Of a DNA stretch of 64,000 bases, positions 1,172-56,158 are shown in pieces. The position numbers and the translations under genes were made by a program. Each line of letters opens with the position of its first letter. Position 1 is the stretch's first letter. The notes under the pieces are model-generated. The model was not told the DNA's origin. It did no database searches and was given only the letters and a program-made list of their open reading frames with translations. The stretch is taken from the sequence record OR142618.1. One strand, given 5' to 3'.

Positions 1172-3583
1172 ATGTACATCGATATTTTCGAAGATAAAAA
1201 AAATGAAATACTTCTAGTTGCAGAACGATCTGCAGGCAAACGAATATACAAACAATACCCTATAGATCATACGTATTACATATTAGATGCAAACGGACCG
1301 TATAAGGATATATTCGGTAATAATGCTAAAGCCATTAAGCCATCTAGCATAAATGAAAAAATGACTCAAATGAAAATGCTAGATTTTTCGCAAACGTGCG
1401 AAATAGACGTCAGGCCAGAATTTAGATGCCTGGAAGTAAACTATAAGAATGCACCTATGCCAGATTTGCATGTTGCATTCTTCGATATCGAGACCGCGTT
1501 TGATCAAAAACGCGGTTATGCCGACCCAGCTGATCCTTTTAATCCCATTATATCAATATCTGTATATTTGCAATGGATGCAGCAAATGGTTTGCTTAGCA
1601 TTAGCACCAGAGACTATATTGCCAGAAGATGCACAACGCATAGCATCAGAAGTAGGCGAAACAATTATATGTAAAAATGAAAAAGAAATGCTAAGTATGT
1701 TTATTGACTTAGTAGAAGATGCAGACATTTTATCAGGTTGGAACTCAGAACGTTTCGATATTCCTTATACTTTTAACAGAATTGTAAAATTATTAGGTAA
1801 GAATGAACTAAGAAAATTATGCCTTTGGAATCTTATGCCCAAGAAGCGCAATATTGAACAAGAAGGCGGCAGTAGTTTTGTTACATTCGAAACATTTGGT
1901 AGAATACATTTAGATTATCTCCAATTGTATAAAAAATATAATTACGAAGAACGTCATAGTTACTCGTTAGATTCTATTTCGGAAATCGAACTAGGTGAAC
2001 GAAAAGTTCCATACAACGGAACGTTAGACAAACTTTATAAATATGATTTTAAAAAGTTTTTAGAATATAACATTCAAGATACTCGACTCCTAGATAAGTT
2101 AGATAGAAAATTAAAATATATAGATCTAGCTTCCACTATTGCACATAGTAATTGCATTCCTATCCCTACTGTTATGGGTGCAGTAGCTACAACCGAACAA
2201 GCAATTATAATCGAAGCACATAATAACGGCATGGTAGTGCCATCTAGGCAACGTTTTAAAAACAATGATACACTTAAAGCTGCGGGCGGTTGGGTAGCAT
2301 ATCCTAAAGTAGGACTGCATAGAGATATTGGCTCCAGTGACTTAAATTCTCTGTATCCTTCTGTGTTAAGGGCACTAAACATGAGCCCAGAAACTATTAT
2401 CGGACAAGTTCGATTAACGCTTACTAACCCTGCAATCGAAGAATGGTGTGCAAAAGGCGGAACAAAACATACATTTGCTGCATGGTGGAACGATAGGTTT
2501 ACCACTTTAGAAATGGAATATGTGTTAAACAAAGACAGGGGTACTATATTAACGTTAGATATGGCAGACGGGCGCTCGTTTGAACTGTCAGGTGCCGAAA
2601 TATACGAATTAGTATTCAACAGTGGTCAGAATTGGCATATCAGTGCTAACGGAACTATATTCACACAAGACAGAGCAGGTGTAATTCCGTTACTACTTAC
2701 AAGATGGTATGCAGAACGTAAAGGGATGCAGAAAATTGCATCAGATTATAATTCTTTAGATAAAGAACACCATAGCGACAAAACTGTATTTTTAGAAGAT
2801 AAATCAGTATTAGATGGAATATGCGTAGGCGAAGTTGAATTAGCAGACCATTATAATATTAATGATGTATATGTTGCAGCTACATTAAAAAATCTTGTCG
2901 AATCAAAAAATTGGCAAGAAGTAGCAATATATATGAAAAAGTATGGTCTAGAAGTGTCGTCTGACAATTCAATTGTTATGTCAGATTCCCATATGCAAAA
3001 CGAATATTACGAATATTGGGATAAAGCCCAGTTAGTTCGTAAAATTGGATTGAACAGCTTATATGGCGGACTACTTAACGAACATTCTAGATTCTACGAT
3101 AAAAGACTAGGACAGAGTACTACACTAACAGGGCGCTGTATCACTAGACATATGGCTTCTAAAACAAACGAAATGTTCACTGGCATTTATGATCACGAAG
3201 GCGATTGTGTAATTTATGGCGATACAGATAGTGTAGATGGATCAACTATCCTAAATACTTCTCTAGGTAAAATAACTATAGAAGAATTGTTTAATGTGTC
3301 TGACAAGCATGTAGTCCATGCAGAAAAAGAATTTGCTTCGAATGAAGATGTTATGGTAATGTCGTGGGACAATTCTGCAAAACAACCATATATGGGGCAT
3401 ATAAACTATGTGTACCGCCACGAAGTAGAAAAAGAGTTATTCGAAATAGAAGACAACAACGGAAATAAAGTTATAGTAACCGAAGATCATTCTATTATGG
3501 TTATACGTAATGCAGAACTACTAGAGGTTAAACCAACAGATTTAACAGACAGTGATATAATATTATCTATTGTATATGAATAA
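1172..3583 (+). CDS. family B DNA polymerase, N-terminal fragment fused to split-intein N-half
   Basis: ExoI FFDIET, ExoII WNSERFD, ExoIII YNIQD, motif A DLNSLYPS, motif B KIGLNSLYG; motif C YGDTD is followed directly by the intein. Likely start is ATG 1172 after an AGGA RBS. Confidence 0.95.
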   Translation: MYIDIFEDKKNEILLVAERSAGKRIYKQYPIDHTYYILDANGPYKDIFGNNAKAIKPSSINEKMTQMKMLDFSQTCEIDVRPEFRCLEVNYKNAPMPDLHVAFFDIETAFDQKRGYADPADPFNPIISISVYLQWMQQMVCLALAPETILPEDAQRIASEVGETIICKNEKEMLSMFIDLVEDADILSGWNSERFDIPYTFNRIVKLLGKNELRKLCLWNLMPKKRNIEQEGGSSFVTFETFGRIHLDYLQLYKKYNYEERHSYSLDSISEIELGERKVPYNGTLDKLYKYDFKKFLEYNIQDTRLLDKLDRKLKYIDLASTIAHSNCIPIPTVMGAVATTEQAIIIEAHNNGMVVPSRQRFKNNDTLKAAGGWVAYPKVGLHRDIGSSDLNSLYPSVLRALNMSPETIIGQVRLTLTNPAIEEWCAKGGTKHTFAAWWNDRFTTLEMEYVLNKDRGTILTLDMADGRSFELSGAEIYELVFNSGQNWHISANGTIFTQDRAGVIPLLLTRWYAERKGMQKIASDYNSLDKEHHSDKTVFLEDKSVLDGICVGEVELADHYNINDVYVAATLKNLVESKNWQEVAIYMKKYGLEVSSDNSIVMSDSHMQNEYYEYWDKAQLVRKIGLNSLYGGLLNEHSRFYDKRLGQSTTLTGRCITRHMASKTNEMFTGIYDHEGDCVIYGDTDSVDGSTILNTSLGKITIEELFNVSDKHVVHAEKEFASNEDVMVMSWDNSAKQPYMGHINYVYRHEVEKELFEIEDNNGNKVIVTEDHSIMVIRNAELLEVKPTDLTDSDIILSIVYE
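3230..3580 (+). mobile_element. split intein N-half (IntN, ~117 aa)
   Basis: Begins SVDGSTIL (block A) right after YGDTD; block B VTEDHSIM; ends at a stop with no block F/G. Confidence 0.92.
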
Positions 3584-5258
3584 AGAATATTATCAGTCAT
3601 ACGCAAAAGAATTAAAAAAGAATAATAAGAAAGAATACAATCGTATTCTTTCTTTGTATGAGCCTGTATTCGATAAATGGGTTGCATTCAAGTATTATAT
3701 AGAAGGAATATCGCCGCCTGTATGTAAAGAATGTGGTAATAGAATAACTGTTTCGGCAAAACAAGCAGAATATCACACAGAATGCAAATATAATAAACAC
3801 AAGTATTCATTTGATAAATTTATAAAATGCATAGATGATGACCAATACATATATTGTGTGTGGAATGGATATATTCCGACATCTGACAATATAACATACA
3901 GATGCACTAAACACGGCATAATTGTTCAAAAACTTAGTTCTAGACTAAAAGGTCACAAATGCCAAAAATGTTCAGCTGAGCGTAAAGTAAGTCTAGATAA
4001 CTTTAATAACTGGAAAACGCAGTGTTCTAAAATACATAATAATTTTTATGATTATTCTGTATCTACTGATTTTACATTCTTAACAAAAGATGTATCTATT
4101 AAATGTCCAATACATGGAATATTTAAACAAAAAGCAAACGTCCATCAATCAGGTCACGGTTGTAAACAATGCTCGTTCGAAGCCATCGGTCATAGATTAT
4201 CATATGACACAGATTCTTTTATAGAAAGAAGTAACAATGTTCATAATAATTTTTATGACTATACCAAAACTATATACACTAACATTAGAGATAAAGTTAT
4301 TATAACATGTCCGATACACGGCGACTTTAATCAGATAGCATATTATCATACTGCCGGACACGGTTGTCAGAAATGCGATTTAGATAAAGTAGCAGAAACT
4401 ACCTATAGATCTAAGGCAGAAATAGAAATATTTGATTTAGTTAAATCTTATTGCTCAGATACAATTCATTCATACAATAAATTCGGGTTCGAATTAGACA
4501 TATATGTTCCTAGTAAAAATCTTGCAATAGAATATAATGGACTTTATTGGCATTCTTCTAAACATATAGAAACTGATCAAAAGTATAAAACATACCATCT
4601 TGATAAAACCACTACATGCGAACAAAATAATATCCAATTATTACACATTTTCGACAACGAATGGCATACTAAAAAAGATATATGGATCTCGGTGATAAAA
4701 AATAAACTAGGTTTATCTAATAAAATATATGCAAGAAAAACAGAAATTAAAGAAGTTAATTTCGATGATGCAAAGCAATTCGCCGAAACGAATCATTTGC
4801 AGGGTCATGCACAATTTCGGCATGCATACGGATTGTATTATTCGGATCAATTAGTTTCTTTATTAACAATTGCAAAGCCCAGGTTTAATAAAAATGCAAA
4901 CTGGGAAATAGTAAGATTTTGTAACCTAAATAACACAAGTGTAATAGGTGGGTTTTCTAAATTATTAAAGGTAGTTTCTTGTAATTTTACAGGCAAGATA
5001 GTATCATATGCAAATAGGCGCTGGTCCGCAGGAAACGTTTATGAAAAAAACGGATTTGCCAAAACTTCAATAATAGCTCCTGGATTTTATTATACTGACT
5101 TCAAAGATACATATAATAGATTATCTTTCTCTAAAGACAAGGCAAAAGTTAAATTAAAAAATTATAATAATTCAGTTAGCGTAGTAGAAAATATTTACGC
5201 AAACGGATATGGCAGGATTTGGGATTCAGGAAATATTGTTTATACAAAGGATTTATAA
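3576..5258 (+). mobile_element. free-standing homing endonuclease (Zn-ribbon repeats + Vsr/Hef-like nuclease + GNAT-like C-terminal domain)
   Basis: Repeated CPIHG.F.Q....H..GHGC..C modules; nuclease SKAEIEI...ELDIYVP..NLAIEYNGLYWH; C-terminal NHLQG...EIVRF...GGFSKLL...YANRRW...IWDSG. Lies between the intein halves. Confidence 0.85.
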
Positions 5259-5513
5259 ATGCATAATCTAACAAAACACCTTTTAGGTGTATTTTCTGCA
5301 AAAACAGAAGACGAAGAATATAACAGTGCAAAAAGAGCGTTAGAAGAATTAAACAAAAATATAAAAGAAAGAGATCCTAATAAATTTAATGTGTCTTTAG
5401 GAAAGGTATCTAAAGTAACTAATTTAGGAAAAAAGAAACAATATGTATACGATATAGGGATGAAAAATCCCGATAATCCGTATTTCTTTGGAAATAATAT
5501 ATTAGTTCACAAT
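5259..5513 (+). mobile_element. split intein C-half (IntC, 85 aa)
   Basis: Ends His-Asn (cac aat 5508-5513); +1 residue is Ser. Confidence 0.92.
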
Positions 5514-6398
5514 TCTTGCTATTTTACTGCATGGCCTGCAGTAAAAGACCTTGTAGAATCCGGCGAAATGGAATGGGATAAAGATACTGTCATTAAATTA
5601 TACGACAACGTTTCGTCGCAAGTAAGTGATACATTTCCAGAATTTTTAAAACAAACATTTAATGTTCCATATAAAAACTCAGAAGGTGTTATTAAGTCAG
5701 GTAGGGAAATTGTAGCTACTTCCGGTCTTTTTATTAAAAAGAAACGTTATGCTGCTATGATGTATGATAAAGAAGGTACTAGATACGACGACGAAAACAG
5801 CCCAGGAAAAGTAAAAGCAATGGGTTTGGACCTACGTCGGTCAGATACGCCTAAATTTGTCCAAACATTCCTTATGGAAATTCTAGTTATGGTGCTAACA
5901 CATAAAACAGAAGATGAAGTAATAGAATATATTAGAGAATTTAAAAAAGAATTTAATAAAATGAAACCGTGGGAAAAGGGAATGCCAAAAGGCGTCAACG
6001 GTATCAGTACATATGAAGATAAATTAGAAGAACACATGAATAAAAAGTTAGCAGGAAGAGAGTCTAGAATCACTGTCCCTGGTCACGTGTCTGCTGCGAT
6101 GAATTGGAATAAACTAAAGCTTATCAATAAAGACCTACATACTCCTAAAATCTCAGATGGTCAAAAATGTGTTGTTTGTTATTTAAAAGAAACAGCAGAC
6201 AATCATTTTACTAGTATAGCATATCCTGTAGATGAATTGCACTTACCAGAATGGTTTACGTCTTTGCCATTTGATGAAGATTTAATGAGAGAAAAAGTAG
6301 TAGATAACAAAGTTAAGAACCTTTTAGGTATTCTAAAATGGGATTTTAGTAAAACAGAAGAAGCTGCTGCACACTTCGATTCGCTGTTTGGTTGGTAA
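5259..6398 (+). CDS. split-intein C-half fused to family B DNA polymerase C-terminal fragment
   Basis: Block F VYDIGM and block G ILVHN|S, then SCYF restoring YGDTDSCYF; later KKRYA and KAMGLD..RSDTP polymerase motifs. Confidence 0.95.
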   Translation: MHNLTKHLLGVFSAKTEDEEYNSAKRALEELNKNIKERDPNKFNVSLGKVSKVTNLGKKKQYVYDIGMKNPDNPYFFGNNILVHNSCYFTAWPAVKDLVESGEMEWDKDTVIKLYDNVSSQVSDTFPEFLKQTFNVPYKNSEGVIKSGREIVATSGLFIKKKRYAAMMYDKEGTRYDDENSPGKVKAMGLDLRRSDTPKFVQTFLMEILVMVLTHKTEDEVIEYIREFKKEFNKMKPWEKGMPKGVNGISTYEDKLEEHMNKKLAGRESRITVPGHVSAAMNWNKLKLINKDLHTPKISDGQKCVVCYLKETADNHFTSIAYPVDELHLPEWFTSLPFDEDLMREKVVDNKVKNLLGILKWDFSKTEEAAAHFDSLFGW

Positions 6399-6478: not shown

Positions 6479-7225
6479 ATGATTGTAGACAATTTAAAGG
6501 ACGTAGTTCGTAACACTCACGGTTTGGGTTTTATAGATACTGTTAAAATTATTGGTTCTGTAAATGAAACTAAATTAGAAGCTATGTCAACCAATAAAAC
6601 TGTAGTTATGTACGGTTCTTTAAAAAAATCCATTCCGGGGTTAGACGATACTGTAGGTTTAAGTAGAATGTCTGTACTGAGCGGTATGTTAAATTTCCCA
6701 CCATATTCGGGAGATGATGCTGAAGTTTCTATTAAGAAACAAGAACGTAACGGTGAAGAAATTCCTGCAGAAATTGTATTTTCTTCTTCGACGGGTCATA
6801 AATCGTCGTACCGGTTTATGGCACGAGATACAGTAGACGAAGTGCTAAAAGTTCCGCCGTTTAGAGGAGTTGTGTGGGATATAGTTATTCAACCTACTAA
6901 ACAAGCGATGAAGGATCTTCAATATTTTAGTGCTGTATTGGGTTCTTATGAATCTAACTTTTTAGTTAAAGTAACAGACGGTGTTTTAGAATTCCACATA
7001 GGTACCGGTGCTACTAGCGACCGCACCGTTGTACCATTTGCAAAAGATGTAAAGAGCACATTACGCAATAACTGGTCCTGGCCATTACCAGAAGTGTTAG
7101 CAATTCTAAAAAACGCAGATAGTGGCAAATGTACTATGTCTATTTCTAGCCAGGGTGCATTAATGATTGAACTCGATACTGGGTTAATAGAAGTTCAATA
7201 TATTCTTCCTGCAAAAAGTGCATAA
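6479..7225 (+). CDS. probable sliding clamp / polymerase processivity factor (gp45/PCNA-like)
   Basis: 248 aa with a clamp-like alternating alpha/beta pattern, directly downstream of the polymerase; ends YILPA. Confidence 0.6.
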   Translation: MIVDNLKDVVRNTHGLGFIDTVKIIGSVNETKLEAMSTNKTVVMYGSLKKSIPGLDDTVGLSRMSVLSGMLNFPPYSGDDAEVSIKKQERNGEEIPAEIVFSSSTGHKSSYRFMARDTVDEVLKVPPFRGVVWDIVIQPTKQAMKDLQYFSAVLGSYESNFLVKVTDGVLEFHIGTGATSDRTVVPFAKDVKSTLRNNWSWPLPEVLAILKNADSGKCTMSISSQGALMIELDTGLIEVQYILPAKSA

Positions 7226-7228
7226 ATA

Positions 7229-7489
7229 ATGATCTTACCTGCTCGTAAATTAGTTAAATTGCAATACTATATTGTACAGGAATCTTACAATTCTATAGGT
7301 AGACCAATAACTACAGTTACTCTTGTATACAGAAAATATATATTTTTTACAAAGAAAGAAAAAATTATATTCGAGCGTATTAAGAAAACAGACAATTTGT
7401 ATTATAAACAAGAATCCGAAAAAGAGTTGTGTGAACAACTAAGTGTATGGGCAAAAAGAACATTAAAAATATATGATATAGGGCAATAA
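7229..7489 (+). CDS. hypothetical protein
   Basis: ORF coupled to the upstream stop and followed by a terminator. Confidence 0.55.
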   Translation: MILPARKLVKLQYYIVQESYNSIGRPITTVTLVYRKYIFFTKKEKIIFERIKKTDNLYYKQESEKELCEQLSVWAKRTLKIYDIGQ

Positions 7490-7504
7490 TTGCCCTATAT
7501 TTTT
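7476..7504 (+). terminator. intrinsic terminator
   Basis: atatagggca-ataat-tgccctatat + T-tract. Confidence 0.7.
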
Positions 7505-7561
7505 CATTTATAAATAAATTAACCTAAATACGTATGCACTAAAGAATAATTAAGGAATATA

Positions 7562-9184
7562 ATGAAAAATTTATCAAACAGTCAAAAAGATTATGCGATC
7601 TATTTGCCTGCAATTAGTGGGTTTTACACAAAACAATTAGACAGTTCCATTAACGATCCGTCTACAAGAAAAATACCTAGCTTTCCTAATGGATATAATA
7701 CTCTTAATTTTTTAGATCCATCTAGCGATACTTTCTTTTACGGGTATGGGTTATATTCTGCAGGCCATGCAGAACTGTCTTTATCTAGAACTGATGCAAA
7801 AGAATGGATGATCCAAGCCAGGGACAAAACACAAACAACAGTTATTGCAGATTCGGGTGGTTTCCAGGTAGCTACTGGTGTAATTAAATTAAACTGGGAT
7901 GATTTTAAAGGAGCTAGCGGAGATAAAATAAGAAATGAAATTTTAAAATGGTGTGAACATACCGCCGACTGGTCAATGACACTAGATGTTCCTGCGTTTG
8001 CTGCTACTCCTCCGTACAGTTCAAAAACCGGTCTTAATAAATTTGAAGATACATTAGATTATTCTCTTCATAATTTACATTATTACATGAAGAACAGAAC
8101 TCCCGGCGCAACTAAATTCCTTAGTGTATTATCAGGATCAGATGTAGATACATCTAAAATTTGGTACGACAACGTAAAAGCATTTAGTGACCCCGCTAAA
8201 GTAGTAGAAATGGGATATCCAGCTAGTCATACACTTGAAGGGTATGCATTTGCTGGTATAAACATGAGAAATATGTATTGTGCTCTTTCTCGATTCTTAG
8301 ATCTAATAGATGATAATATTATTTCAGATAAAAACTGGATACACTTTCTTGGATTAGGCAGGACTGATTGGGCTTGTTTCTTAACATCTATTCAGCGAAA
8401 TATAAGAAAACATTATAATCCCAATATTAACATAAGTTTTGACGCGGCTTCTCCGTTTGTTTCTGTGGCATACGGTCTTGCATATAACTATAATTATTTT
8501 AATCCCAAACGGTGGGGATATAATATGGATTCTGCCCCAGACAGCAGAGAGTTTAGTGATAAGGATATTCCTATGCCGTTTATGAGTCCTATTATGGAAA
8601 AATTATCATTAAAAGACATATGTCCATATCACAATGGTTATGGTATAATAAATGGCGTTAAAAATGCAAACTTTACAAAAGAAGATGTAGAAACTGCTCT
8701 TAAAGAAGGAAAAGATGCAGAATACGTGCCGCCTAGCGCAAATAAAAATGGTAAAGTAGGTAAAACCAGTTGGGATTCACTTAGTTACTTATTAATAATG
8801 AATCACAATGTTTACAACCATATAGCTGCAATCCAAGAATCTAATAGATTAGTCGATATAGAACGGTTGCGAGTTAAAGTAGATTACCGAGATTGGACTA
8901 GAGATAAAAAGAAAGGTACTATAGAAGTAAGTAATCACGTCCCTAGTTCGATTTTATATTTTGACCATTTCGTAGAAGTATTGCTAGATCCGAGTACTCC
9001 TAATAAGCGACAATTACTAGAAGATTATAGACCTATGCTAGACAGCATTAGTTTCGGTAATTATAACTCAAACTCATTTAACAGTCTTTTTGATGTAGAT
9101 GCTACTGCAATTGAAGATGAAAATAAGTTTGCAGACATAAACGACGAAAAACTAACTGAATTAGAACAAGGATTAGACAATTAA
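7562..9184 (+). CDS. tRNA-guanine transglycosylase-fold protein, probable DNA 7-deazaguanine insertase (DpdA-like)
   Basis: TGT signature ADSGGFQ, MTLDVP, HFLG, SFDAASP; clustered with QueE and QueD-like genes. Confidence 0.75.
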   Translation: MKNLSNSQKDYAIYLPAISGFYTKQLDSSINDPSTRKIPSFPNGYNTLNFLDPSSDTFFYGYGLYSAGHAELSLSRTDAKEWMIQARDKTQTTVIADSGGFQVATGVIKLNWDDFKGASGDKIRNEILKWCEHTADWSMTLDVPAFAATPPYSSKTGLNKFEDTLDYSLHNLHYYMKNRTPGATKFLSVLSGSDVDTSKIWYDNVKAFSDPAKVVEMGYPASHTLEGYAFAGINMRNMYCALSRFLDLIDDNIISDKNWIHFLGLGRTDWACFLTSIQRNIRKHYNPNINISFDAASPFVSVAYGLAYNYNYFNPKRWGYNMDSAPDSREFSDKDIPMPFMSPIMEKLSLKDICPYHNGYGIINGVKNANFTKEDVETALKEGKDAEYVPPSANKNGKVGKTSWDSLSYLLIMNHNVYNHIAAIQESNRLVDIERLRVKVDYRDWTRDKKKGTIEVSNHVPSSILYFDHFVEVLLDPSTPNKRQLLEDYRPMLDSISFGNYNSNSFNSLFDVDATAIEDENKFADINDEKLTELEQGLDN

Positions 9185-10245
9185 TGAAAGTTATAATAAT
9201 CCCAATCGAATCAATAGAAACTCGGTATACGTCAGAATGGAATACGTTTCTTAAACCGCAACTAGAAAAGTATATAAACGAATCCGGTCTCGATGCAGAA
9301 ATAGTTCAAATCGATGTAGATTATGTTGACGAAGGCACCTCTGCGGGCGCCTTCCTTAACTTTGCAAATACAAACATATTCAAAAGCAATCAATTCATTA
9401 AGTTAGCAAGTATAATAGAAACTTTAAACGATAACGATGTTGTTCTCTATACAGACGCATGGAATCCCACAGTAGTTCAACTAAATTACATGCGATCGTT
9501 AATGAATAAAAAATTTAAAATAATGGGGTTGTGGCACGCCGGTTCGTATGATCCGCATGATTTTTTAGGAAGGCACTTTGATAAAAATTGGTCATATGAA
9601 TTTGAAAGATCATTATATAATATATATGATGTAAATTTCTATGCAACTAATTTTAGTAAAGATCTCATGATAGATAACCTTTTTGGTAAAACAGCTAACG
9701 TAAACAGACACGATATAGTAGGTTGGCCAATGGAATATTTAGTTGACCAACTTACGCCTTCTCCTAACAAGACAGATACTATATTATTTCCTCATCGAAT
9801 TTCTCCTGAAAAACAACCAAATATATTCAAAAAATTAAGATCATTACTTCCTAACTACGAGTTTGTTTTTGCACAAGAAACTAAATTATCAAAGGCAGAA
9901 TATCATACACTTCTTAAACGTTCTAAAATTGTCTTTTCGGCTTCGTTGCAGGAAACATTGGGTATAGGTTTCTACGAAGGTGCATTAGTCGGTGCAATTC
10001 CGTTATTGCCTGACCGATTGTCTTATAAAGAAATGACAGAAAATGTAAAAAACAGAAATTTATATGTATATCCAAATGAATGGACTATTTCAGAAAATCT
10101 GGCAGACCTAAAAAATTTAGTTACCCTAATAGATTATACTATGCGTAATTATAATTTTATAGTAGAAGAAATGAAACTTAATTTACTGCCCGAATTAAAC
10201 AAATATTATAACGGAACAGAGTTGTATAAAAGAATTTTAAAATAA
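9184..10245 (+). CDS. glycosyltransferase (GT-B fold)
   Basis: FPHRISPEKQP, SASLQETLGIGFYEGALVGAIPLLPDRLSY donor-binding motif; start overlaps the TGT-like stop. Confidence 0.8.
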   Translation: MKVIIIPIESIETRYTSEWNTFLKPQLEKYINESGLDAEIVQIDVDYVDEGTSAGAFLNFANTNIFKSNQFIKLASIIETLNDNDVVLYTDAWNPTVVQLNYMRSLMNKKFKIMGLWHAGSYDPHDFLGRHFDKNWSYEFERSLYNIYDVNFYATNFSKDLMIDNLFGKTANVNRHDIVGWPMEYLVDQLTPSPNKTDTILFPHRISPEKQPNIFKKLRSLLPNYEFVFAQETKLSKAEYHTLLKRSKIVFSASLQETLGIGFYEGALVGAIPLLPDRLSYKEMTENVKNRNLYVYPNEWTISENLADLKNLVTLIDYTMRNYNFIVEEMKLNLLPELNKYYNGTELYKRILK

Positions 10246-10329
10246 TTTCCATTTAATATTCTGCATGCAATTTACATTTTAATACGAAAACATTATAATA
10301 TTACAAAATTAAAAATAAGGATTATTTTT

Positions 10330-10707
10330 ATGGGAATTAAACGATGGATCGAAGTTCCTTTTCAAAAAGAAGGAATTCACATGTACCCGGGTGCAGATAA
10401 TAACCCTGCACTAGCTACAAATGATTGGAAAGATGTATCTTTTTTAGGATATCCTCATTTTCATTATTTTTATTTTACTGTTAAAATTGAAGTTTTTCAT
10501 AATGAACGAGATATCGAATTTATTCAATTTAGACGGTTCTTAGAAAGACTATATAGTGAATCTCTGCTAAAACTAGATGGTAAATCTTGTGAAACAATGG
10601 CAGAAGAATTATATGAACAAATTAACATTGTATATCCTAACAGGGACGTTGTGATTACAGTGGCAGAAGACAATATTAATAAAGCTGTTTTAGAATTTTT
10701 CAAATAA
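10330..10707 (+). CDS. QueD-like T-fold protein (DpdL-like variant)
   Basis: EGIH.YP, LGYPHFHYF (LxxxHxHxF instead of QueD CxxxHGH), DIEFIQF, SCETMAE, VAED. Confidence 0.7.
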   Translation: MGIKRWIEVPFQKEGIHMYPGADNNPALATNDWKDVSFLGYPHFHYFYFTVKIEVFHNERDIEFIQFRRFLERLYSESLLKLDGKSCETMAEELYEQINIVYPNRDVVITVAEDNINKAVLEFFK

Positions 10708-10721
10708 GCAAGGATGCTATT

Positions 10722-10982
10722 ATGTATAATAAACAACTGTCAGGAATATATACTACTACAACGATAAACTCTATGCCAGCTAGCTACTCCGGATTAACGG
10801 ATCTAGGCATGTATGATACAGAACTTTCGGTATTGAGGAAAAAGATAGAACAGATAGAAAAAATGTTGTGCATGTTAGAAGTAGATAAATTACTTTCAGA
10901 AAAATATCCTGCATTAAAATCTGCATATGACGAATACGAAGTCATATTATCTATCATAAACGGTACGGAGAAAAAAGAGTAA
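10722..10982 (+). CDS. hypothetical protein
   Basis: Operonic ORF with RBS; KYPALKSAYDEY segment. Confidence 0.65.
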   Translation: MYNKQLSGIYTTTTINSMPASYSGLTDLGMYDTELSVLRKKIEQIEKMLCMLEVDKLLSEKYPALKSAYDEYEVILSIINGTEKKE

Positions 10983-11501
10983 ATGGCAATGCGTGTCATT
11001 ATTACTGGTTGTAACGGTTATGTTGGTAAAACAGTAAGCAAATACTACTATACATTAGGATATAATGTAGTGGGATTTGATTTAATTAATTCAAAAAATA
11101 GTTACATAACTAATTTTTATCAAACTAGCTATGCATCTAGTATCGCAGAAGATATAATACTCGAGTCTGATGCAGACACGCTTATTCATTGTGCTGTAGA
11201 AAAAAGCAATACATTACAACAACATTTCTACCACAATAGTATTCAATTTATAAACTTATTATCAGTATTAAAAAATACTTCTATAAAAGAAATAATAGTA
11301 TTTAGAAATAAAAGTGCAGAAAATAATGATGCCCTTTTAAAACTCTCTAATAACACTAATAAAGACTATTTAGAAGAATTTTCTAAATCGACAGGAATTA
11401 ATTCAAAAATATATAATTTGTTAGATAAGAATAATGAACAACACATTATAGAATTAGTACAACCGTATTTAGAATTAAGTAAACACTTTTATATATTTTA
11501 A
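10983..11501 (+). CDS. truncated NAD-dependent epimerase/dehydratase-like protein
   Basis: Rossmann motif IITGCNGYVG, D.LIHCA; only 172 aa and no YxxxK seen. Confidence 0.6.
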   Translation: MAMRVIITGCNGYVGKTVSKYYYTLGYNVVGFDLINSKNSYITNFYQTSYASSIAEDIILESDADTLIHCAVEKSNTLQQHFYHNSIQFINLLSVLKNTSIKEIIVFRNKSAENNDALLKLSNNTNKDYLEEFSKSTGINSKIYNLLDKNNEQHIIELVQPYLELSKHFYIF

Positions 11502-11512
11502 GGAGATATTAT

Positions 11513-11947
11513 ATGTACGATAAAAATTTTGTATCAATGGATCAAATGCCAGTTATTGTCAGTGACTTGGTTAGTGATATAGACGAAGCAGGAATTTCTC
11601 CTAAAGTTATTATTGCTATTAGCAAAGGTGGACTAATTCCTGCCACTATGATTAGCTATTATTATGATTGCCCTATTGTAACATACGATCCGGTAGAAGA
11701 TTGTTTTAGTACAAATAATGACATAAGTTCTGAATGCATTATCGTAGATGATGTTATTGACACCGGTAATACTGTAAATTCTGTTATTTCTTTGTTAGAA
11801 GACGAATTCTTTTTTACGAAAGAAGACATTAGTAGAATTAGAGTAGCATCAATATTTGCAACAAGAAATAATACAATTGTAGATTTTTATCATGATGAAA
11901 TAAGTTACCATGATTCGGTAAGTTTTGAATTTAAACAATTTATTTAA
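11513..11947 (+). CDS. type I phosphoribosyltransferase (purine PRTase-like)
   Basis: IAISKGGLIPA and PRPP-binding IIVDDVIDTGNT. Confidence 0.85.
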   Translation: MYDKNFVSMDQMPVIVSDLVSDIDEAGISPKVIIAISKGGLIPATMISYYYDCPIVTYDPVEDCFSTNNDISSECIIVDDVIDTGNTVNSVISLLEDEFFFTKEDISRIRVASIFATRNNTIVDFYHDEISYHDSVSFEFKQFI

Positions 11948-12017
11948 TATAAAGTTATTCTTTACTTTTAGTATGATTGCGTTTATAATGTATATTATAA
12001 AATAAAGCGGATTATGT

Positions 12018-12890
12018 ATGAAACACAGATATACTGAAAAGTTTTTCTCAGTCCAGGGAGAAAGCCTACATACCGGAAAATTATGCACTTGGCTTAGATT
12101 TTTCGGATGTTCGTTGCAATGTAGGGGCTTTGGACAAAAAGAACCTGGAAATCCCGAAACATGGGTAGAACAACGACCGGATTTAATAGATGTAACAAAC
12201 ATTACAGATTATAAACAATTACCGACTCCTAAGTATGGATGTGATTCAGACTATTCTGTATTTGCTAAATTTAAACATCTTGCAACAGAAGTCGATCCTG
12301 TTGTAGTTGCAAATGAAATAAAACAATTAATTCCTAGTAAAACATTTGGTAAAAAAATAGGTCATGTATTTACGGGCGGAGAACCGTTAGTAAACCAAGA
12401 ATCTATAGTAGATATAGTAAATTATTGGATAGATACTAATGATTATCCTGCATGGATAGGAATAGAAACAAATACAACTAGACCGTTAGAAAAATGCTTA
12501 ATCGATTTAGTTAACAGATGCAAATCGATCGGTGTGCAATTTTATTTTTCTATGTCACCTAAACTACTTCATGTAGCAGGTGAACAACCCAAACGAGCTA
12601 TCCATATAAATTTAATGAAGGAATATATAGATATTGCACCGGATAGCTATCTAAAATTTGTAGTAAATGAAGATCAGCGATCGTGGGATCAAGCAAAAAG
12701 TATAGTAGACACATTAAATGCTGATGGGTATTTACCGGATGTGTGGGTTATGCCAGTCGGAGGCATTTATTCCCAACAAACAGACCCTGTAATTGGAAGA
12801 CTTGCAGATAAAGCTATCTTCGAATACGAATGGAATGTTAGTTTGCGTGTTCACGTATTAACCTGGGGTGACGATCAACTAGGTAGGTAA
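12018..12890 (+). CDS. queE: 7-carboxy-7-deazaguanine synthase (radical SAM)
   Basis: EKFFSVQGE...G....LRFFGCSLQC...CDS, FTGGEPL, IETN, SPKL, LKFVV, V.VMP.G, RVHV..WG. Confidence 0.85.
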   Translation: MKHRYTEKFFSVQGESLHTGKLCTWLRFFGCSLQCRGFGQKEPGNPETWVEQRPDLIDVTNITDYKQLPTPKYGCDSDYSVFAKFKHLATEVDPVVVANEIKQLIPSKTFGKKIGHVFTGGEPLVNQESIVDIVNYWIDTNDYPAWIGIETNTTRPLEKCLIDLVNRCKSIGVQFYFSMSPKLLHVAGEQPKRAIHINLMKEYIDIAPDSYLKFVVNEDQRSWDQAKSIVDTLNADGYLPDVWVMPVGGIYSQQTDPVIGRLADKAIFEYEWNVSLRVHVLTWGDDQLGR

Positions 12891-12894
12891 AATC

Positions 12895-13314
12895 ATGAAC
12901 CGTATTATCCTTTCTGTAGCGTTTAGTTTAATATCGTTGCATGCAGTATGCGGAGAAAATAAATCCCATATAAATCCGTATCTTCATGGAAAATGCGTCG
13001 GGATGGTTACTAAACTCTCTGAATACGCAAATACCGAAGTATTAACTTTAAAATTGTATAATATAGGTCAGGTACTTCATGCATACGGCAAATACACTGC
13101 ACTAAAATCGAATAATGCAGATACAGCACTGTATGATCAAGGATTAGTTGACGGAAGAGAAACAGTTTCTAAAAATATAGAAAATAACAATTTTAATGTT
13201 TTAGTAAAATATTATGAAGATAATTGTCTAGAAATATTTTACAAATCTGCAGACTGGTTATATCATAATAACATACATCAGTTCAATAAATTAACGGATA
13301 TTTTTAATAAATGA
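12895..13314 (+). CDS. hypothetical protein with N-terminal signal-like segment
   Basis: Hydrophobic N-terminus, operonic. Confidence 0.55.
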   Translation: MNRIILSVAFSLISLHAVCGENKSHINPYLHGKCVGMVTKLSEYANTEVLTLKLYNIGQVLHAYGKYTALKSNNADTALYDQGLVDGRETVSKNIENNNFNVLVKYYEDNCLEIFYKSADWLYHNNIHQFNKLTDIFNK

Positions 13315-13922
13315 AAAAAAGATTATTTCCATTTTGGTTATGGCCATATAGCTGGGGATTACCTGCTAAACAGAAAGCTATTGCAAAAGCAGAGTATTAT
13401 CTCGAAGGAGAAGAATTAGATAGGGAATTAGTAGCACTATCGAATACAACAAGCAAAGCCAAAGAAATTGAATTATTACATATTGATTTTAAATATGGTA
13501 AAATAACAGAATACGAATACGATGTTGCTTTAGCTAAAACTCAATACGATCCGGGTCTGGCTTTAGACTTAAAATTAGCTGATATAGATTTAAAGCATCA
13601 TAAAATAAATGAAAGGGAACATAGCAAACGAATTGCTACCTTAAGAAAGTTACCTTGGGTAGATATAATAAAGATAGGCTTGTCTTCTTCTGATATTTCG
13701 ACAGGAGAAATGGAATTAGACTGGAATGAATATTTTATAGAAGAATTGCACGAATACGGATATGTAGGTAGGACTGATGAAGAAGTAGTAAATTTATGGT
13801 TATCTACTTTATGTAAAAATATCGCATTAGACGAATTTGGTGGAATGGGATCTGTAGACGATCTTTCAGAAGATAATGACAAAATAGATAGCAAAGAAAA
13901 CTATAAAAGGGAATTTAAGTAA
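13311..13922 (+). CDS. conserved hypothetical protein
   Basis: ATGA overlap; acidic C-terminus ELDWNEYFIEEL..GY.G. Confidence 0.75.
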   Translation: MKKRLFPFWLWPYSWGLPAKQKAIAKAEYYLEGEELDRELVALSNTTSKAKEIELLHIDFKYGKITEYEYDVALAKTQYDPGLALDLKLADIDLKHHKINEREHSKRIATLRKLPWVDIIKIGLSSSDISTGEMELDWNEYFIEELHEYGYVGRTDEEVVNLWLSTLCKNIALDEFGGMGSVDDLSEDNDKIDSKENYKREFK

Positions 13923-36282: not shown

Positions 36283-37184
36283 TGAAGGTCCGTTATTTTC
36301 ATCCCATAAACAATGTATTCGAAGAAACAGTATGGGATAAGCCCGATATAAAAAATACAGAAATTGAAGTCAAAACAAAATATGTAGGTGTTTCCAATAA
36401 TGATTTAAATGTAATTTATAACCAAACACCTTATGCTAGTAACAAATATGGTTGTGAAAGTGTAGGTATAGTAACAAAAGTTGGATCTAAAATTACTGAT
36501 GTAAAAGTGGGAGATTTTGTAGCCACAACTACGAATCATTTATATTCAGATTTTTATAATTGTAAAACAGAAGAATATGTAAAAATTCCTAAATGTTCTC
36601 CTAGATATATTTTAGAACCAATTGCTCGATCATTAAATTTAATAACACAAAATTGGAACAAATTTGTAGAGTTAAATAGAAACGAAGGTAAAATACTTAT
36701 TCTAGGATCTGGTTTTGTTGCATCTGTACTGTATACTGTCTTAACAAAAGAACACGATGTTGATCCTAATAGAATATATGTTGTTGGATCTCATAATAAA
36801 TCTATCTTTAATAAATCGTTGTATAATACTCTACCGATTCACTTGTATGACATAGTGTTTGATCTGCAGGGCATGAACACACCCTTAACAAATAATATAT
36901 TGAATACGAATTCCTTATTAATAATAGGTGCCGCAGGTAAACCGACTTTAATAGATTTAAATCTATTGGCACATAAATCTGTTACAATAAATTTCCCTAG
37001 TCCCGATAATAATAAATTTTACGAATCATTAAATGATGCATGTAGAATAGTAGAAACTAAAATCTTTGATCCTAATAAATTTTGGACTAAGGGATATAAA
37101 AGAGACACTGAATGGAAAAGTGCATTCAGTACAGGGATTAATCGCCCGAAACATTATAATTATGGTTATATTATTTGGAACTAA
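36282..37184 (+). CDS. medium-chain (GroES-like/Zn) dehydrogenase-like protein
   Basis: EIEVK..YVGV...D, GCESVG.V.KVG..IT.VKVGD.V, LEP, ILG.GF. Confidence 0.65.
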   Translation: MKVRYFHPINNVFEETVWDKPDIKNTEIEVKTKYVGVSNNDLNVIYNQTPYASNKYGCESVGIVTKVGSKITDVKVGDFVATTTNHLYSDFYNCKTEEYVKIPKCSPRYILEPIARSLNLITQNWNKFVELNRNEGKILILGSGFVASVLYTVLTKEHDVDPNRIYVVGSHNKSIFNKSLYNTLPIHLYDIVFDLQGMNTPLTNNILNTNSLLIIGAAGKPTLIDLNLLAHKSVTINFPSPDNNKFYESLNDACRIVETKIFDPNKFWTKGYKRDTEWKSAFSTGINRPKHYNYGYIIWN

Positions 37185-37186
37185 CA

Positions 37187-37693
37187 ATGGATAGAAAAGA
37201 AGTAATTTATTTTATAGGAACAGAAGTCGAACATACTCCAGTATACGGTGAAAAAACACTTTTTGTTGCTGGTCCACAAGACGGCGACGAAGTAGTAAGT
37301 AATGCATTGAAACATAACTGTAAACATATATATTTCGGTGCTAATCAAAGTTTCCCTCTACACAAAATAGATATAACAGAAGTAATTAAATGGAAACAAA
37401 TGATACTGCATTGCTTAAATAAAGGATTTTGGTGTACTTTAGATTTCGATATATGCAATTCTTCTGTAATTTTAGAAATGGATTTATCTAAGTATGATAA
37501 ATTTATTCCTATTATAAGTGCAAAAATACCAAATATATCCGAATACAATAAAAACACTATAATAAAGATAGATGATATAGGTTTTAATGAAACTAACGAA
37601 GGAGTATGGTGTCATAAGTTAAACGATTTAAAAGATAATACCGTACATACTAGCTGGGACAAATATACAGGAGATATTTCAATTGACGAATAA
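37187..37693 (+). CDS. conserved phage hypothetical protein
   Basis: F.G.EVEHTP.YG.KTLFV.G, HIYFGANQSF, KIDD.GF..TN.GVW.H. Confidence 0.7.
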   Translation: MDRKEVIYFIGTEVEHTPVYGEKTLFVAGPQDGDEVVSNALKHNCKHIYFGANQSFPLHKIDITEVIKWKQMILHCLNKGFWCTLDFDICNSSVILEMDLSKYDKFIPIISAKIPNISEYNKNTIIKIDDIGFNETNEGVWCHKLNDLKDNTVHTSWDKYTGDISIDE

Positions 37694-52103: not shown

Positions 52104-52180
52104 CCCTCGGTAGCTCAGTTGGTTAGAGCGCGCGACTCATAATCGCTAGGTCACTGGTTCGAATCCAGTTCGAGGGACCA
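52104..52180 (+). tRNA. tRNA-Ile2(CAU)
   Basis: Cloverleaf with CCA; anticodon arm GCGA-CUCAUAA-UCGC like E. coli ileX. Confidence 0.85.
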
Positions 52181-52202
52181 ATTTTAAGATGTTGTGCTTT
52201 TA

Positions 52203-52287
52203 GCCCGAGTGGTGAAATTGGTAGACACAGGAGACTTAAAATCTCCCGCTTCGCAGCGTACCGGTTCGAGTCCGGTCTCGGGTACCA
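52203..52287 (+). tRNA. tRNA-Leu(UAA)
   Basis: ggaga-cttaaaa-tctcc, long variable arm, CCA. Confidence 0.95.
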
Positions 52288-52337
52288 AACAAAAGATATA
52301 AATACTTAACAAGATAGGAAACTATTCTAAAATTAAA

Positions 52338-52413
52338 TGGCTAGTAGCTCAGTTGGTAGAGCAAATGACTGTTAATCATTGGGTCGTAGGTTCGAGTCCT
52401 ACCTAGCCAGCCA
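52338..52413 (+). tRNA. tRNA-Asn(GUU)
   Basis: aatga-ctgttaa-tcatt, CCA. Confidence 0.95.
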
Positions 52414-52439
52414 ATTACACTTTGTTGTATATTCAATAT

Positions 52440-52515
<76 letters not shown>

Positions 52516-52584
52516 ATTTTAAATAACAGTTGTATCTAAAGAGATACAATAGTCTAAATAAAATATTCATATAATGTTTCAAAC

Positions 52585-52661
52585 GGGACTTTAGCTCAGT
52601 TGGTTAGAGCGCGCGACTCATAATCGCTAGGTCACTGGTTCGAATCCAGTAAGTCCCACCA
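52585..52661 (+). tRNA. tRNA-Ile2(CAU), second copy
   Basis: Body identical to 52104 copy, different acceptor stem gggactt/aagtccc. Confidence 0.85.
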
Positions 52662-52711
52662 ATTTTTATATACAAATCAAACTATACTTAAACTATATAA
52701 TGAATGAATAT

Positions 52712-52796
52712 GCCCGGTTGGTGAAATCGGTAGACACAGGAGACTTAAAATCTCCCGACGAAAGTCGTGCCAGTTCGAGTCTGGCACCGGGCACCA
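52712..52796 (+). tRNA. tRNA-Leu(UAA), second copy
   Basis: ggaga-cttaaaa-tctcc, CCA. Confidence 0.95.
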
Positions 52797-52824
52797 AACT
52801 CCTACAAAAGGAACATATTATAGT

Positions 52825-53649
52825 ATGTTCCTTTTTTATTATGATATTTTTATTATGAATGAAATAATGCATATATCTGCCAACACATACGTAATAGAAT
52901 ATCGCGTATTAAACAAGTTAGTAGTCACTATAAAAAATAATAGATCTTTTACATTATGGGTACATTTTGATATCGGTACATTTTCTATGGCATGGAAATA
53001 CAATGCAATATAGAATTAAAAAATGAAATACATTATTAATTTACAATACTCAACAGAAGTAATATATATGCCGTGTTTCAACATAATATCGTTATGCGAT
53101 AATAGATATGTTACTATCCTTTCTATTACTATGATATTTAAGATAAGATACTATTTGCATCCGATGTTCCGTTATATTCTATAATACATAATATTTTTAT
53201 TGTAACATATACCAGAAGTGCTTAGATAATATATAGCAATTCTGTTTATTATCGATATTGCGGTATACTTAGCAAAAAATATTTATTTCTTATTAATTGT
53301 ATTACATAGAATAAAGAATGGAAAGAATTTTAACTATTTCACATAAAACATTAATATGTGAACTGTCGTTATTAAAATGGTCGGAATCCATAGTTTGTGC
53401 ATATTCTGGCGAAATAATATGGTATGTTCGGCTGCATAAGAATTGTTATGTAGTACAGCTAAGATGATAATGAACTGTATTTTTTCCTATTCGTACTATT
53501 TAGAACGCATCGTATGTCATGCAAAAATCTACAAAGGGTTTGTAGTCAGTAAAAATACTTTTTGTGAGAAATCCGTAATAGCTTTATACTTAATAAATAG
53601 TGGTAGTTATTTTCATAAATGTTACGTCGATCATTACTTAATTGTATAG
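52825..53649 (+). CDS. small orphan ORFs between tRNAs (52825..53013, 53023..53184, 53443..53649)
   Basis: Short Ile/Tyr-rich ORFs. Confidence 0.35.
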
Positions 53650-53671
53650 ATATATATTTTAATAAAAATAG

Positions 53672-53700
53672 TTGACCAAACGCACAAAACAGTATATAAT
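53672..53700 (+). promoter_or_regulatory. sigma70-like promoter
   Basis: TTGACC-N17-TATAAT. Confidence 0.75.
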
Positions 53701-53751
53701 GTTACGCATACAAAGCATTATTACAAAGCTATCATTAGTTGCACAAGATAT

Positions 53752-53828
53752 GCGCTCGTAGCTCAGCTGGATAGAGCATCCGCCTTCTAAGCGGATGGTC
53801 GGGGGTTCGAATCCCTCCGGGCGCGCCA
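53752..53828 (+). tRNA. tRNA-Arg(UCU)
   Basis: tccgc-cttctaa-gcgga, CCA. Confidence 0.95.
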
Positions 53829-53849
53829 ATTTTTAAAGAGTGTTGTGTT

Positions 53850-54699
53850 ATGCAAACAATAAGATTTGACATAAGACTTCTTCGTTATAGTATGAAACAA
53901 GGTTTCTGCTGTATAGGTAAAGATATATTTGAAGTGTGCAGAAAAACTCAGATCAGTCCAGGTCAGCTAAACTTACGAAAAAATTATATAGGACGAGTAT
54001 TAATCGGAATTGATTCAAACTACAATCTGCACAATACCTGTTTAGTAGGATGGACTCGCTATAAAAATATTATAGTATAAAAATTTATATTAATAATATG
54101 AATAGATGCAAAGAACATCTACAATACAGAACAATCAAAAAGCATACATTAACTTGTAGGAAATGCAAAGAGTTATCGTTACAAATAAAATTATTTTGGC
54201 TTCAACAACAAGCATTCAGTATTAGAACCGATACTAGCGGAATATACATATTCGATATTAAATATAATTCTATTTACGTATACTCTGTAGCTTGGTATAA
54301 TACAGAATTATACGGTAAAGGGAAAATAATTTTAGAATAAACATGTATATAAGAGTACCTCAATTAATGAATAATTATTCTAATGATACAGATATTCTAA
54401 AATGGATAAAGCGTAACAATAGAAAAAATGCACGTCTAATTTCATATATAGACGGAATATATAATATTGTTTATTTCGATGGCGGAAAAGCAAGAGTTGG
54501 CATAGTAAAAGACAATATGCACTGCAGATACGGAATACATAGTCGTGGATCTATGTATTCGAAAGATATAATGAGCCTGTGGCAATCTAGTACAGGTTCG
54601 TGTTCGCCTGATGATGTAAAGATTATGCAAGATTATCTAGACGATAAATGTGTGCTTCCGGAATTTGATTTTTCTCAGATTAAAAATTTAAAATGGTAA
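53850..54699 (+). CDS. three hypothetical proteins (53850..54080, 54098..54340, 54343..54699)
   Basis: Tandem ORFs. Confidence 0.5.
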
Positions 54700-54722
54700 A
54701 TAATATAACAATATAGTTTTAT

Positions 54723-54799
54723 CGCAGGGTATGCAAGAGGTCTAAGCAGAAAGGCTCATAACCTTTTTATCGTGGGTTCGAATCCCACCCCTGCAACCA
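54723..54799 (+). tRNA. tRNA-fMet(CAU), atypical
   Basis: C1:A72 mismatch (initiator determinant); anticodon stem aaagg/ccttt. Confidence 0.8.
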
Positions 54800-54808
54800 G
54801 TTTTATAT

Positions 54809-54885
54809 CTAGGCATAGCTCAAGTAGGTAGAGCACTTGCTTTGGGAGCAAGAGGTTGGGGATTCGAGGTCTCCTGCCTAGACCA
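54809..54885 (+). tRNA. tRNA-Pro(UGG)
   Basis: cttgc-tttggga-gcaag, CCA. Confidence 0.92.
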
Positions 54886-54894
54886 ATTTACTAT

Positions 54895-54967
54895 GCAGTC
54901 CTAGCTCAATTGGTAGAGCACTGTCCTTCCAAGTCAGATGTTACGGGTTCGAGTCCCGTGGGCTGCT
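54895..54967 (+). tRNA. tRNA-Gly(UCC)
   Basis: ctgtc-cttccaa-gtcag; followed by CAA rather than CCA. Confidence 0.85.
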
Positions 54968-55784: not shown

Positions 55785-56144
55785 ATGATTTCCAAAATTC
55801 AAATTGTATACGGAATATATCTTCCTACTGCCGATGCAAAAATTATATACGAAGACTCGGAATACGAATCTAATAAAATAAATAAAAATATTAGATTATT
55901 TGCAAATGATGCATATTTAGAAGATAAGATTTTAGAAAATAAGGAATTTGAAGATAATCCCTATGTTCCGCACTTTTATGGTATCTTTTGTAAAGAATTC
56001 GATAATGACCAAAGTGCATACTTATATAATGTTCCTAAATCTTTTATAGATGAATATAATAATGTAGCTCCAGCTATTTTAGCTAGACTCGGTTATTTAG
56101 ATAGAGTTGCAGGAAAACAACATTGTAGAATAATTTACGAATAG
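55785..56144 (+). CDS. hypothetical protein
   Basis: 119 aa ORF. Confidence 0.6.
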   Translation: MISKIQIVYGIYLPTADAKIIYEDSEYESNKINKNIRLFANDAYLEDKILENKEFEDNPYVPHFYGIFCKEFDNDQSAYLYNVPKSFIDEYNNVAPAILARLGYLDRVAGKQHCRIIYE

Positions 56145-56158
56145 AATTAACTAGTTTT

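Follow-up and report, generated by a model that had tools for sequence, protein, structure and literature searches.

The window analysed here is a stretch of 64,000 nucleotides (nt) from the record of Pseudomonas phage Callisto (OR142618.1), and positions 7562 to 12890 of it carry a compact run of genes that appears to form the core of a system for placing a 7-deazaguanine in phage DNA, with a glycosyltransferase (GT) embedded among the base-modifying enzymes. Window coordinates are those of the Callisto record minus 124000, and translations follow genetic code table 11. The run and its upstream flank hold the following features, in which ORF stands for open reading frame and aa for amino acids.

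7475..7501, + strand: terminator-like hairpin, a 12-bp stem then a T-rich tail, just upstream of the cluster
7562..9184, + strand: P0001, 540 aa, predicted tRNA-guanine transglycosylase (TGT)-fold protein, candidate DNA guanine transglycosylase (DpdA-like, of a separate family)
9184..10245, + strand: P0002, 353 aa, predicted GT-B glycosyltransferase of the GT4 type
10330..10707, + strand: P0003, 125 aa, DpdL homologue with a QueD-like T-fold, proposed 7-carboxy-7-deazaguanine decarboxylase
10722..10982, + strand: 86-aa ORF, with homologues inside the module in 26 related loci
10983..11501, + strand: truncated short-chain dehydrogenase/reductase (SDR), 172 aa, NAD-binding half only
11513..11947, + strand: type I phosphoribosyltransferase (PRTase), 144 aa, with an intact phosphoribosyl pyrophosphate (PRPP) motif IIVDDVIDTGNT
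12018..12890, + strand: QueE-like radical SAM enzyme (7-carboxy-7-deazaguanine synthase), 290 aa

An earlier note, made from the letters of this DNA alone, had described six genes here (TGT-fold, GT, QueD-like, epimerase-like, PRTase and QueE), and the ORF list bears out all six where the note had placed them, each on the + strand. The overlap of 1 nt that it had seen between the first two is also real: the stop codon of the TGT-like gene (9182-9184) and the start codon of the GT gene (9184-9186) share one nucleotide in the string TAATG at 9182-9186 (...gacaatTAATGaaa) and, as judged from the reading frames, the GT is translationally coupled to the transglycosylase both here and in the phage ACP17. 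Transcription of the preceding unit probably ends at the hairpin. Positions 7000-13500 are 100% identical to Callisto, and the same segment is 98.6-99.4% identical in PA5oct, MIJ3, Paride, PAC2 and other members of Wroclawvirus, a genus of jumbo phages of ~287 kb; records matching the window label the 290-aa gene queE.

The earlier note had read a TGT fold from a DSGGFQ string in the first gene. The string is present at residues 97-102 of the 540-aa protein and the predicted structure agrees with the reading. The AlphaFold model (predicted local distance difference test, pLDDT, 87.6; predicted template modelling score, pTM, 0.87) returned from the PDB with Foldseek a top 50 made up entirely of tRNA-guanine transglycosylases (E ~2e-6). 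With VIA-align it superposes on the Thermotoga maritima TGT at Z 19.1 and a root-mean-square deviation of 4.5 Å over 313/360 residues, and on the archaeosine TGT, human QTRT1 and Zymomonas mobilis TGT at Z 18-19, such that model residues 5-470 are spanned. A lead from the ESM Atlas, independent of the AlphaFold model, gives the same fold, and the modelling thereby shows the 540-aa protein to be built on that of the tRNA-guanine transglycosylases. Moreover, an alignment of 35 family members contains three invariant motifs, D97-S-G-G-F-Q102, H261-F-L-G-L-G266 and S292-F-D294-A-A-S-P, in which D97, S98, G100, Q102, H261, L263, G264, G266 and D294 are the invariant residues; they presumably correspond to the catalytic-site residues of TGTs such as the Z. 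mobilis enzyme. The triad DSGGFQ, HFLGLG and SFDAASP has a parallel in the validated DpdA family of phage 9g, where DSGAF, HGFG and CDSSS are invariant. The family also shares a conserved extra C-terminal region, and C272 and C354 are its only nearly invariant cysteines.

Sequence searches are of little help in placing this protein. Scans of it against Pfam, PHROG and NCBIfam gave no match, nor did a scan of the whole Callisto record with PF01702 or HMMER searches of PDB sequences with either the single protein or a family profile. These failures are uninformative as regards a link to TGTs, because the PF01702 and PDB tests also miss the DpdA of 9g, a validated enzyme. BLASTP against the DpdA3 of phage phiST matched the HFLG-G motif only, and single-protein scans of IMG/VR with phiST DpdA3 and with gp123 of ACP17 yielded too few relatives for bridging profiles. 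The ACP17 protein gp123 is itself weakly similar to the 540-aa family (E 3e-4; 12.8 bits against at most 2.3 for ~200 decoy ORFs), and it is 38% identical to a protein of Xanthomonas phage X1 that its depositors labelled queuine tRNA-ribosyltransferase. The 540-aa family is large: it comprises >1,600 clusters at the 90% identity level, ~50% identical to the protein described here, with no Pfam domain and on contigs of up to 390 kb.

Genomic context adds to this picture. Among 81 related loci (80 from IMG/VR and one from an NCBI assembly), 80 keep the gene order DNA polymerase B, clamp, TGT-like gene, which is also the order in which phage 9g carries its own DpdA. There are related loci, too, that encode FolE and QueE together with the TGT-like gene. 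The Vibrio phage 2.275.O provides an independent deazaguanine context for the family: its 596-aa homologue (E 1e-26) has the same motifs and is flanked by genes for QueF, a YhhQ-type transporter, QueC, a Gat domain and FolE. From the fold, this context and the published digests discussed below, we infer a candidate DpdA role for the 540-aa enzyme, namely the exchange of guanine in DNA.

Two further observations concern the surroundings of this gene. In Vibrio phage 2.275.O the TGT-like homologue is followed by a gene (L093, 9723-10835) that encodes 370 aa with a weak Amidoligase_2 match and is not a GT, which suggests a different decoration in a preQ1-type context. In Callisto, a 172-aa protein, P0370 (window 37175-37693, + strand), lies 28 kb downstream, beside a gene resembling zinc-dependent alcohol dehydrogenases; its homologues (~174 aa, 41% identity) stand 3' of the TGT-like gene in 72 related loci, with a median gap of ~310 nt, and occur in 57/58 loci having enough flank. 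The P0370 family matched nothing in Pfam or the PDB; it is possibly a partner of the module that has gone unrecognised.

A protein with the fold of tRNA-guanine transglycosylases might act on tRNA, either the host's or the phage's own. The window holds 12 tRNA genes (52104-56343, + strand), among them three tRNA-Met(CAT), one tRNA-Asn(GTT) and a Met-Leu pair that occurs twice, and tRNA-Asn, with its GUU anticodon, is of the class that normally receives queuosine. Such a role in place of one on DNA is, however, highly improbable. The TGT-like gene sits with the replication genes, as does the DpdA gene of phage 9g; PA5oct DNA resists several restriction enzymes and is sensed by nucleases specific for modified G; and DpdL, a homologue of which is encoded two genes further on, is linked to the deoxynucleoside of 7-deazaguanine (dDG) in DNA (PMC10516641).

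That homologue is the 125-aa protein. The DpdL signature consists in the change of the QueD motif CxxxHGH to LxxxHRHxF, in a context where FolE, QueD and QueE are present and QueC is not (PMC10516641). The earlier note had given this motif, which the same paper confirms, and had read the local variant as LGYPHFHYF; that string is indeed found at residues 40-48, with Arg replaced by Phe and with the Leu, both His and the final Phe retained. The protein is 33% identical to CGPG_00067 of phiST, the founding DpdL (E 6e-16), and 47% identical to the ACP17 homologue, such that the QueD-like gene of the earlier note is, by sequence, a member of the DpdL family. Library scans with it matched only an unnamed PHROG. 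Of the residues shared with QueD, the alignment retains the HxH pair (H44, H46), the His of GIH (H17) and two invariant Glu, E88 and E113, with a Leu where QueD has its catalytic Cys. Most metagenomic homologues have the exact LxxxHRHxF, and HFHYF is found in the PA5oct group and in loci L024, L061 and L062.

The remaining genes for a supply of the base fit the same signature. FolE, QueD and QueC lie outside the window, as had been noted, and the search of the rest of the genome that the note had proposed located, ~46 kb before the window begins, FolE, QueD in canonical form (CRHLHGH) and another PTPS (6-pyruvoyltetrahydropterin synthase) paralogue; QueC is absent from the entire Callisto record. 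The second PTPS/QueD paralogue, P0006 (Callisto record 80073-80543; L006, 8074-8544), has CSRIHGY in place of CxxxHGH; its distance from the genes for canonical QueD and for FolE is 2 kb, and ClpX, ClpS and IbpB-like genes surround it. Within the cluster, the 290-aa protein matches the QueE-like phrog_2076 over its full length (6.6e-49); NCBIfam QueE models match the N-terminus only, far below their cut-offs, and by our reading the cysteines follow the pattern C31-x3-C35 ... C75-D-S-D-Y, with a 39-residue insert before the third. The gene that had been called epimerase-like is so in part. The Rossmann NAD-binding half is there (Epimerase, 29.6 bits, in the N-terminal half only, with TGCNGYVG for TGxxGxxG), but a Phe stands at the catalytic Tyr position, the C-terminal substrate domain is missing and the length is 172 residues versus 329 in relatives. 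It is probably a remnant of the relatives' full-length 329-aa epimerase/dehydratase, as judged by alignment, and because of this truncation it cannot tailor a sugar in this phage.

The PRTase is present as claimed, with Pribosyltran at 43.6 bits versus a cut-off of 26.3 and xanthine/purine PRTases as its closest models. Its position between DpdL and QueE, together with the intact PRPP motif, brings into consideration a nucleotide route, in which the PRTase would make a nucleotide of 7-carboxy-7-deazaguanine (CDG) or 7-deazaguanine that is then reduced, phosphorylated and incorporated by the polymerase, leaving the TGT-like enzyme a secondary role. TubE performs a PRTase step of this kind in tubercidin biosynthesis, and the phage encodes a ribonucleotide reductase. 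PRTases occur in phiST and in 36/58 of the related loci that extend at least 8 kb downstream, the sample to which the counts out of 58 refer, and in Campylobacter, cells infected by phage CP220 were observed to contain a deazaguanine nucleoside (PMC10516641). The TGT-like gene, however, is universal in the group and the PRTase is not, and the sequence-selective resistance of PA5oct DNA fits site-specific exchange better than bulk replacement, all of which makes the nucleotide route quite improbable.

Evidence on the DNA itself is indirect and comes from this resistance. A 2025 preprint describes PA5oct DNA as resisting restriction in a sequence-selective manner and proposes a modified G (PMC12191111); ten enzymes are listed, of which BsgI, FspI, HindIII, NdeI and DraI are the five not named as resisted, and modified-G-sensing nucleases attack the phage. 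QueE and a PTPS are named by the authors, who leave the base chemically unassigned (PMC12191111). The first PA5oct paper makes no mention of DNA modification. With these published restriction data, the reading of the cluster in the earlier note as a 7-deazaguanine DNA-modification system is supported, and the presence of a deazaguanine in the phage DNA is very probable.

Less expected in such a system is the GT. Its model (pLDDT 90.8) finds its best structural matches in BshA, MshA, PglA and HepE, all retaining enzymes of GT4, at E 9e-10 to 6e-9, TM ~0.6 and 11-13% identity for BshA and MshA; the model thus shows P0002 as a GT-B enzyme of the GT4 type, closest to BshA and MshA. The EX7E motif (E257-x7-E265) is invariant in 30 GT sequences. 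The Glycos_transf_1 match of P0002 itself is weak and below threshold (19.9 bits versus 26.4), a threshold that its relatives pass (27.6 bits in L020, 42.0 in Burkholderia phage BCSR5, 45.5 in Xanthomonas phage X1). At least 8,000 clusters make up the family, and marine samples contributed many of them.

What ties this GT to the modification is its distribution. DpdL is present in 58/58 and the GT in 57/58 of the related loci, and wherever a locus holds both, they lie within 4 kb of each other (64/64), within 1.5 kb in 51. Among isolated phages the GT is found within 4 kb of DpdL in the PA5oct group, Phosso, ACP17, Xanthomonas phages X1/BUDD and BCSR5. ACP17 has the order transglycosylase, GT, DpdL, QueE, with a GT 39% identical to P0002 (E 4e-62); in Phosso the GT adjoins DpdL and the transglycosylase lies ~170 kb from both; in X1 and BCSR5 the GT is within a few kb of DpdL. 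The transglycosylases of ACP17, X1 and BCSR5 are only distantly related to the 540-aa protein. Conversely, Vibrio phage 2.275.O, which has the TGT-like gene and no DpdL, has no orthologue of the GT. Since the GT is found in DpdL lineages and is absent where the TGT-like gene stands without DpdL, it follows the DpdL (7-deazaguanine) branch and not the transglycosylase. In other words, the part of the earlier note that proposed a glycosylated deazaguanine as the product is strengthened because the GT follows DpdL across lineages, and the product itself stays conjectural.

The modules of relatives also hold genes of a kind that might prepare a sugar, with a full-length epimerase/dehydratase in 49/58 loci, a cytidylyltransferase-like gene and, in BCSR5, a PIG-L deacetylase. 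The BCSR5 module (L104, 8403-15802) reads QueD, DpdL, AAA_28, a PAPS-reductase-like protein, the PIG-L deacetylase, GT, a 446-aa DSGGFQ protein and QueE, and its pairing of GT4 and PIG-L recalls the transfer of N-acetylglucosamine (GlcNAc) and the deacetylation in bacillithiol/mycothiol synthesis. That of X1 (L105, 2152-8256) holds FolE, a PAPS-reductase-family protein, GT, an annotated TGT, DpdL and QueE. In an abundant marine relative (L090) there are two 2-oxoglutarate (2OG)-Fe(II) oxygenase genes in the module (7989-8594 and 11822-12454) as well as a HIT-family gene. A hydroxyl group for the GT to act on could come from such an oxygenase. In the PA5oct group a gene for a 2OG oxygenase is found only at a distance of ~45 kb (PAC2 258959-259477).

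Two other accounts of the GT have to be weighed. On the first, the base would be plain dDG or its 7-carboxy counterpart (dCDG), as in phiST, and the GT would be unrelated to it, acting on a protein, a component of the host envelope or another metabolite. DpdL does occur without such a GT in phiST, where dDG, given as a nucleoside of 267 Da whose base ion appears at m/z 151, was measured in the DNA (PMC10516641), as well as in Ahp1, RHph_I1_18 and others; moreover, the nearest structures to the GT act on small molecules or glycans and not on DNA, and 7-deazaguanine presents no obvious acceptor atom. Such a separation of functions is nevertheless unlikely, in that the GT accompanies DpdL in nearly all related loci and tracks it within 4 kb in five lineages of isolated phages whose transglycosylases are only distantly related to one another or far from DpdL, is absent where the TGT-like gene stands without DpdL, and is coupled to the transglycosylase here and in ACP17. 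On the second, the GT, SDR, T-fold proteins and FolE, all of them present in the group together with PTPS-type proteins, would make a glycosylated pterin comparable with the biopterin glucoside of cyanobacteria, and the GT4 structures matched by the model do include a UDP-glucose:tetrahydrobiopterin glucosyltransferase (5zes). It ranks 36th, however, and is not set apart from other GT4 enzymes; the T-fold protein is a DpdL and not a PTPS with a catalytic Cys; and QueE and the TGT-fold enzyme would have no role in a pterin glycoside pathway, such that this account is scarcely credible.

On the preferred reading, to which we give a probability of about 0.6, these genes are the central part of a system by which PA5oct-type jumbo phages modify their DNA with 7-deazaguanine. 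In such a system GTP would be converted into CDG by FolE, QueD and QueE, and DpdL would strip the carboxyl group to give 7-deazaguanine. The TGT-like enzyme would then swap guanine for 7-deazaguanine in selected sequence contexts of the phage DNA after replication, and the exchanged base would protect the DNA from restriction enzymes. The GT would move a sugar from a nucleotide-sugar onto the deazaguanine, either in DNA or as the free base before insertion, the latter being conceivable because BshA and MshA, the structures closest to it, transfer sugars to small molecules. The PRTase would most likely salvage the released guanine or turn the deazapurine base into a nucleotide. Whether the deazaguanine carries a sugar is, taken by itself, an evenly balanced question: we infer the sugar addition from co-inheritance only. 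As speculation, decarboxylation by DpdL would leave C7 free, and a C-linked sugar might be attached there. More tentatively still, and at somewhat less than even odds, PA5oct-type phages and very abundant uncultured large phages of marine and fresh waters might all make a glycosylated 7-deazaguanine by means of an unclassified 540-aa TGT branch and a GT4 enzyme.

Several points weigh against this reading. One is that 7-deazaguanine is without a hydroxyl group for ordinary O-glycosylation. The decarboxylase activity of DpdL is a proposal even for the founding member, and Cui et al. did not obtain dDG in Escherichia coli from dpdA + dpdL of either phiST or ACP17 (PMC10516641). The 540-aa protein has only 4 Cys and not the CxCxxC zinc motif, and in hhalign comparisons its family reaches probabilities of just 0.2% with DpdA1 and 3% with DpdA3, neither of them significant. 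It and the GT are both acidic, with isoelectric points of 5.4 and 5.65, which gives no hint of DNA binding. The adjacency of the TGT-like and GT genes is peculiar to the window itself, as 0/64 other GT-bearing loci share it, and the SDR that might have tailored a sugar persists in the PA5oct group only as a remnant.

The failed reconstitution can also be looked at from the other side. Cui et al. suggest that other enzymes may be needed for dDG (PMC10516641), and in ACP17 the GT orthologue lies between dpdA and dpdL; no mention of it was found in the text of that paper. The GT becomes in this way a candidate for the missing factor and, if the proposal is true, a sugar-bearing base could explain why dpdA + dpdL of ACP17 alone did not suffice. 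A literature search gave no description of a glycosylated deazaguanine in DNA. To our knowledge, no purine analogue bearing a sugar has been described in DNA before, and such a 7-deazapurine, if it exists, would be of interest for DNA-labelling chemistry. For PA5oct-type phages, including Paride, which are studied for therapy against P. aeruginosa, the matter has a practical side, as DNA modification decides which restriction systems and which END nucleases, enzymes that sense modification, stop them, and the gene set constitutes a concrete proposal for the base in PA5oct DNA. The product of the module is probably among the more common DNA modifications of environmental large phages, given that >1,600 clusters belong to the transglycosylase family and at least 8,000 to that of the GT, on contigs of up to 400 kb and without functional annotation.

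Some neighbouring features complete the description of the locus. Upstream of the TGT-like gene the DNA polymerase B gene is split (window 3570-6398, + strand; L001, 173-5399), with a 562-aa ORF at 3570-5258 between the two polymerase parts that is annotated in PAC2 as a Hef-like homing endonuclease; in the related metagenomic loci L007 and L090 the polymerase is a single gene. Directly 3' of QueE is a 139-aa ORF (12895-13314, + strand) with a hydrophobic, signal-like segment at its N-terminus, of which there is no homologue in the 81 related loci. Contigs from RNA libraries cover 8755-13000, a coverage that is no proof of transcription.

The cluster can be compared with several known systems. 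With the TGTs of Z. mobilis and T. maritima and with QTRT1, the 540-aa protein shares the fold over ~310 residues (Z 18-19) and an identical DSGGFQ, and the Asp of its F-D motif is presumably at the position of the TGT nucleophile. In contrast to them, it is only ~14-15% identical, has no Pfam TGT match and no CxCxxC...H zinc site, is ~180 residues longer, including a conserved helical C-terminal region, and stands in a context that points to DNA. BshA and MshA, which transfer GlcNAc from UDP-GlcNAc to malate or inositol phosphate, differ from the GT in sequence (11-13% identity) and in that the PA5oct cluster has no deacetylase, but they are its best structural matches, share EX7E, and have in the GT and PIG-L-family deacetylase of BCSR5 an echo of the BshA/BshB and MshA/MshB pairs. 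The α-GT and β-GT of phage T4, which act on 5-hydroxymethylcytosine, are likewise phage GT-B enzymes, for which the proposed parallel is a sugar on a non-canonical base as armour against restriction; they belong, however, to another GT family and are absent from the top 50 structural matches of the GT, and the base here would be a purine analogue without a hydroxymethyl acceptor, DNA being only a candidate substrate of the GT.

The DpdA1 system of phage 9g differs in having QueC or Gat-QueC, in inserting a preQ0-derived base (dG+) and in having neither DpdL nor GT, but it shares with the cluster the order polymerase, clamp, transglycosylase, the deazaguanine biosynthesis genes, and the parallel motif triad DSG-x-F, H-x-x-G and x-D-S/A-S/A-S. 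Lastly, in the DpdL system of phiST and ACP17 (PMC10516641), the DpdA3 of phiST has 259 aa and no significant sequence or profile similarity to the 540-aa family, that of ACP17 gp123 being weak; phiST has plain dDG and no such GT, and the DpdL motif here has Phe for Arg. Against these differences stand the genes that the two have in common, namely FolE, QueD, QueE, DpdL and an enzyme of the TGT superfamily, with no QueC, and, in the case of ACP17, the same order of transglycosylase, GT, DpdL and QueE.

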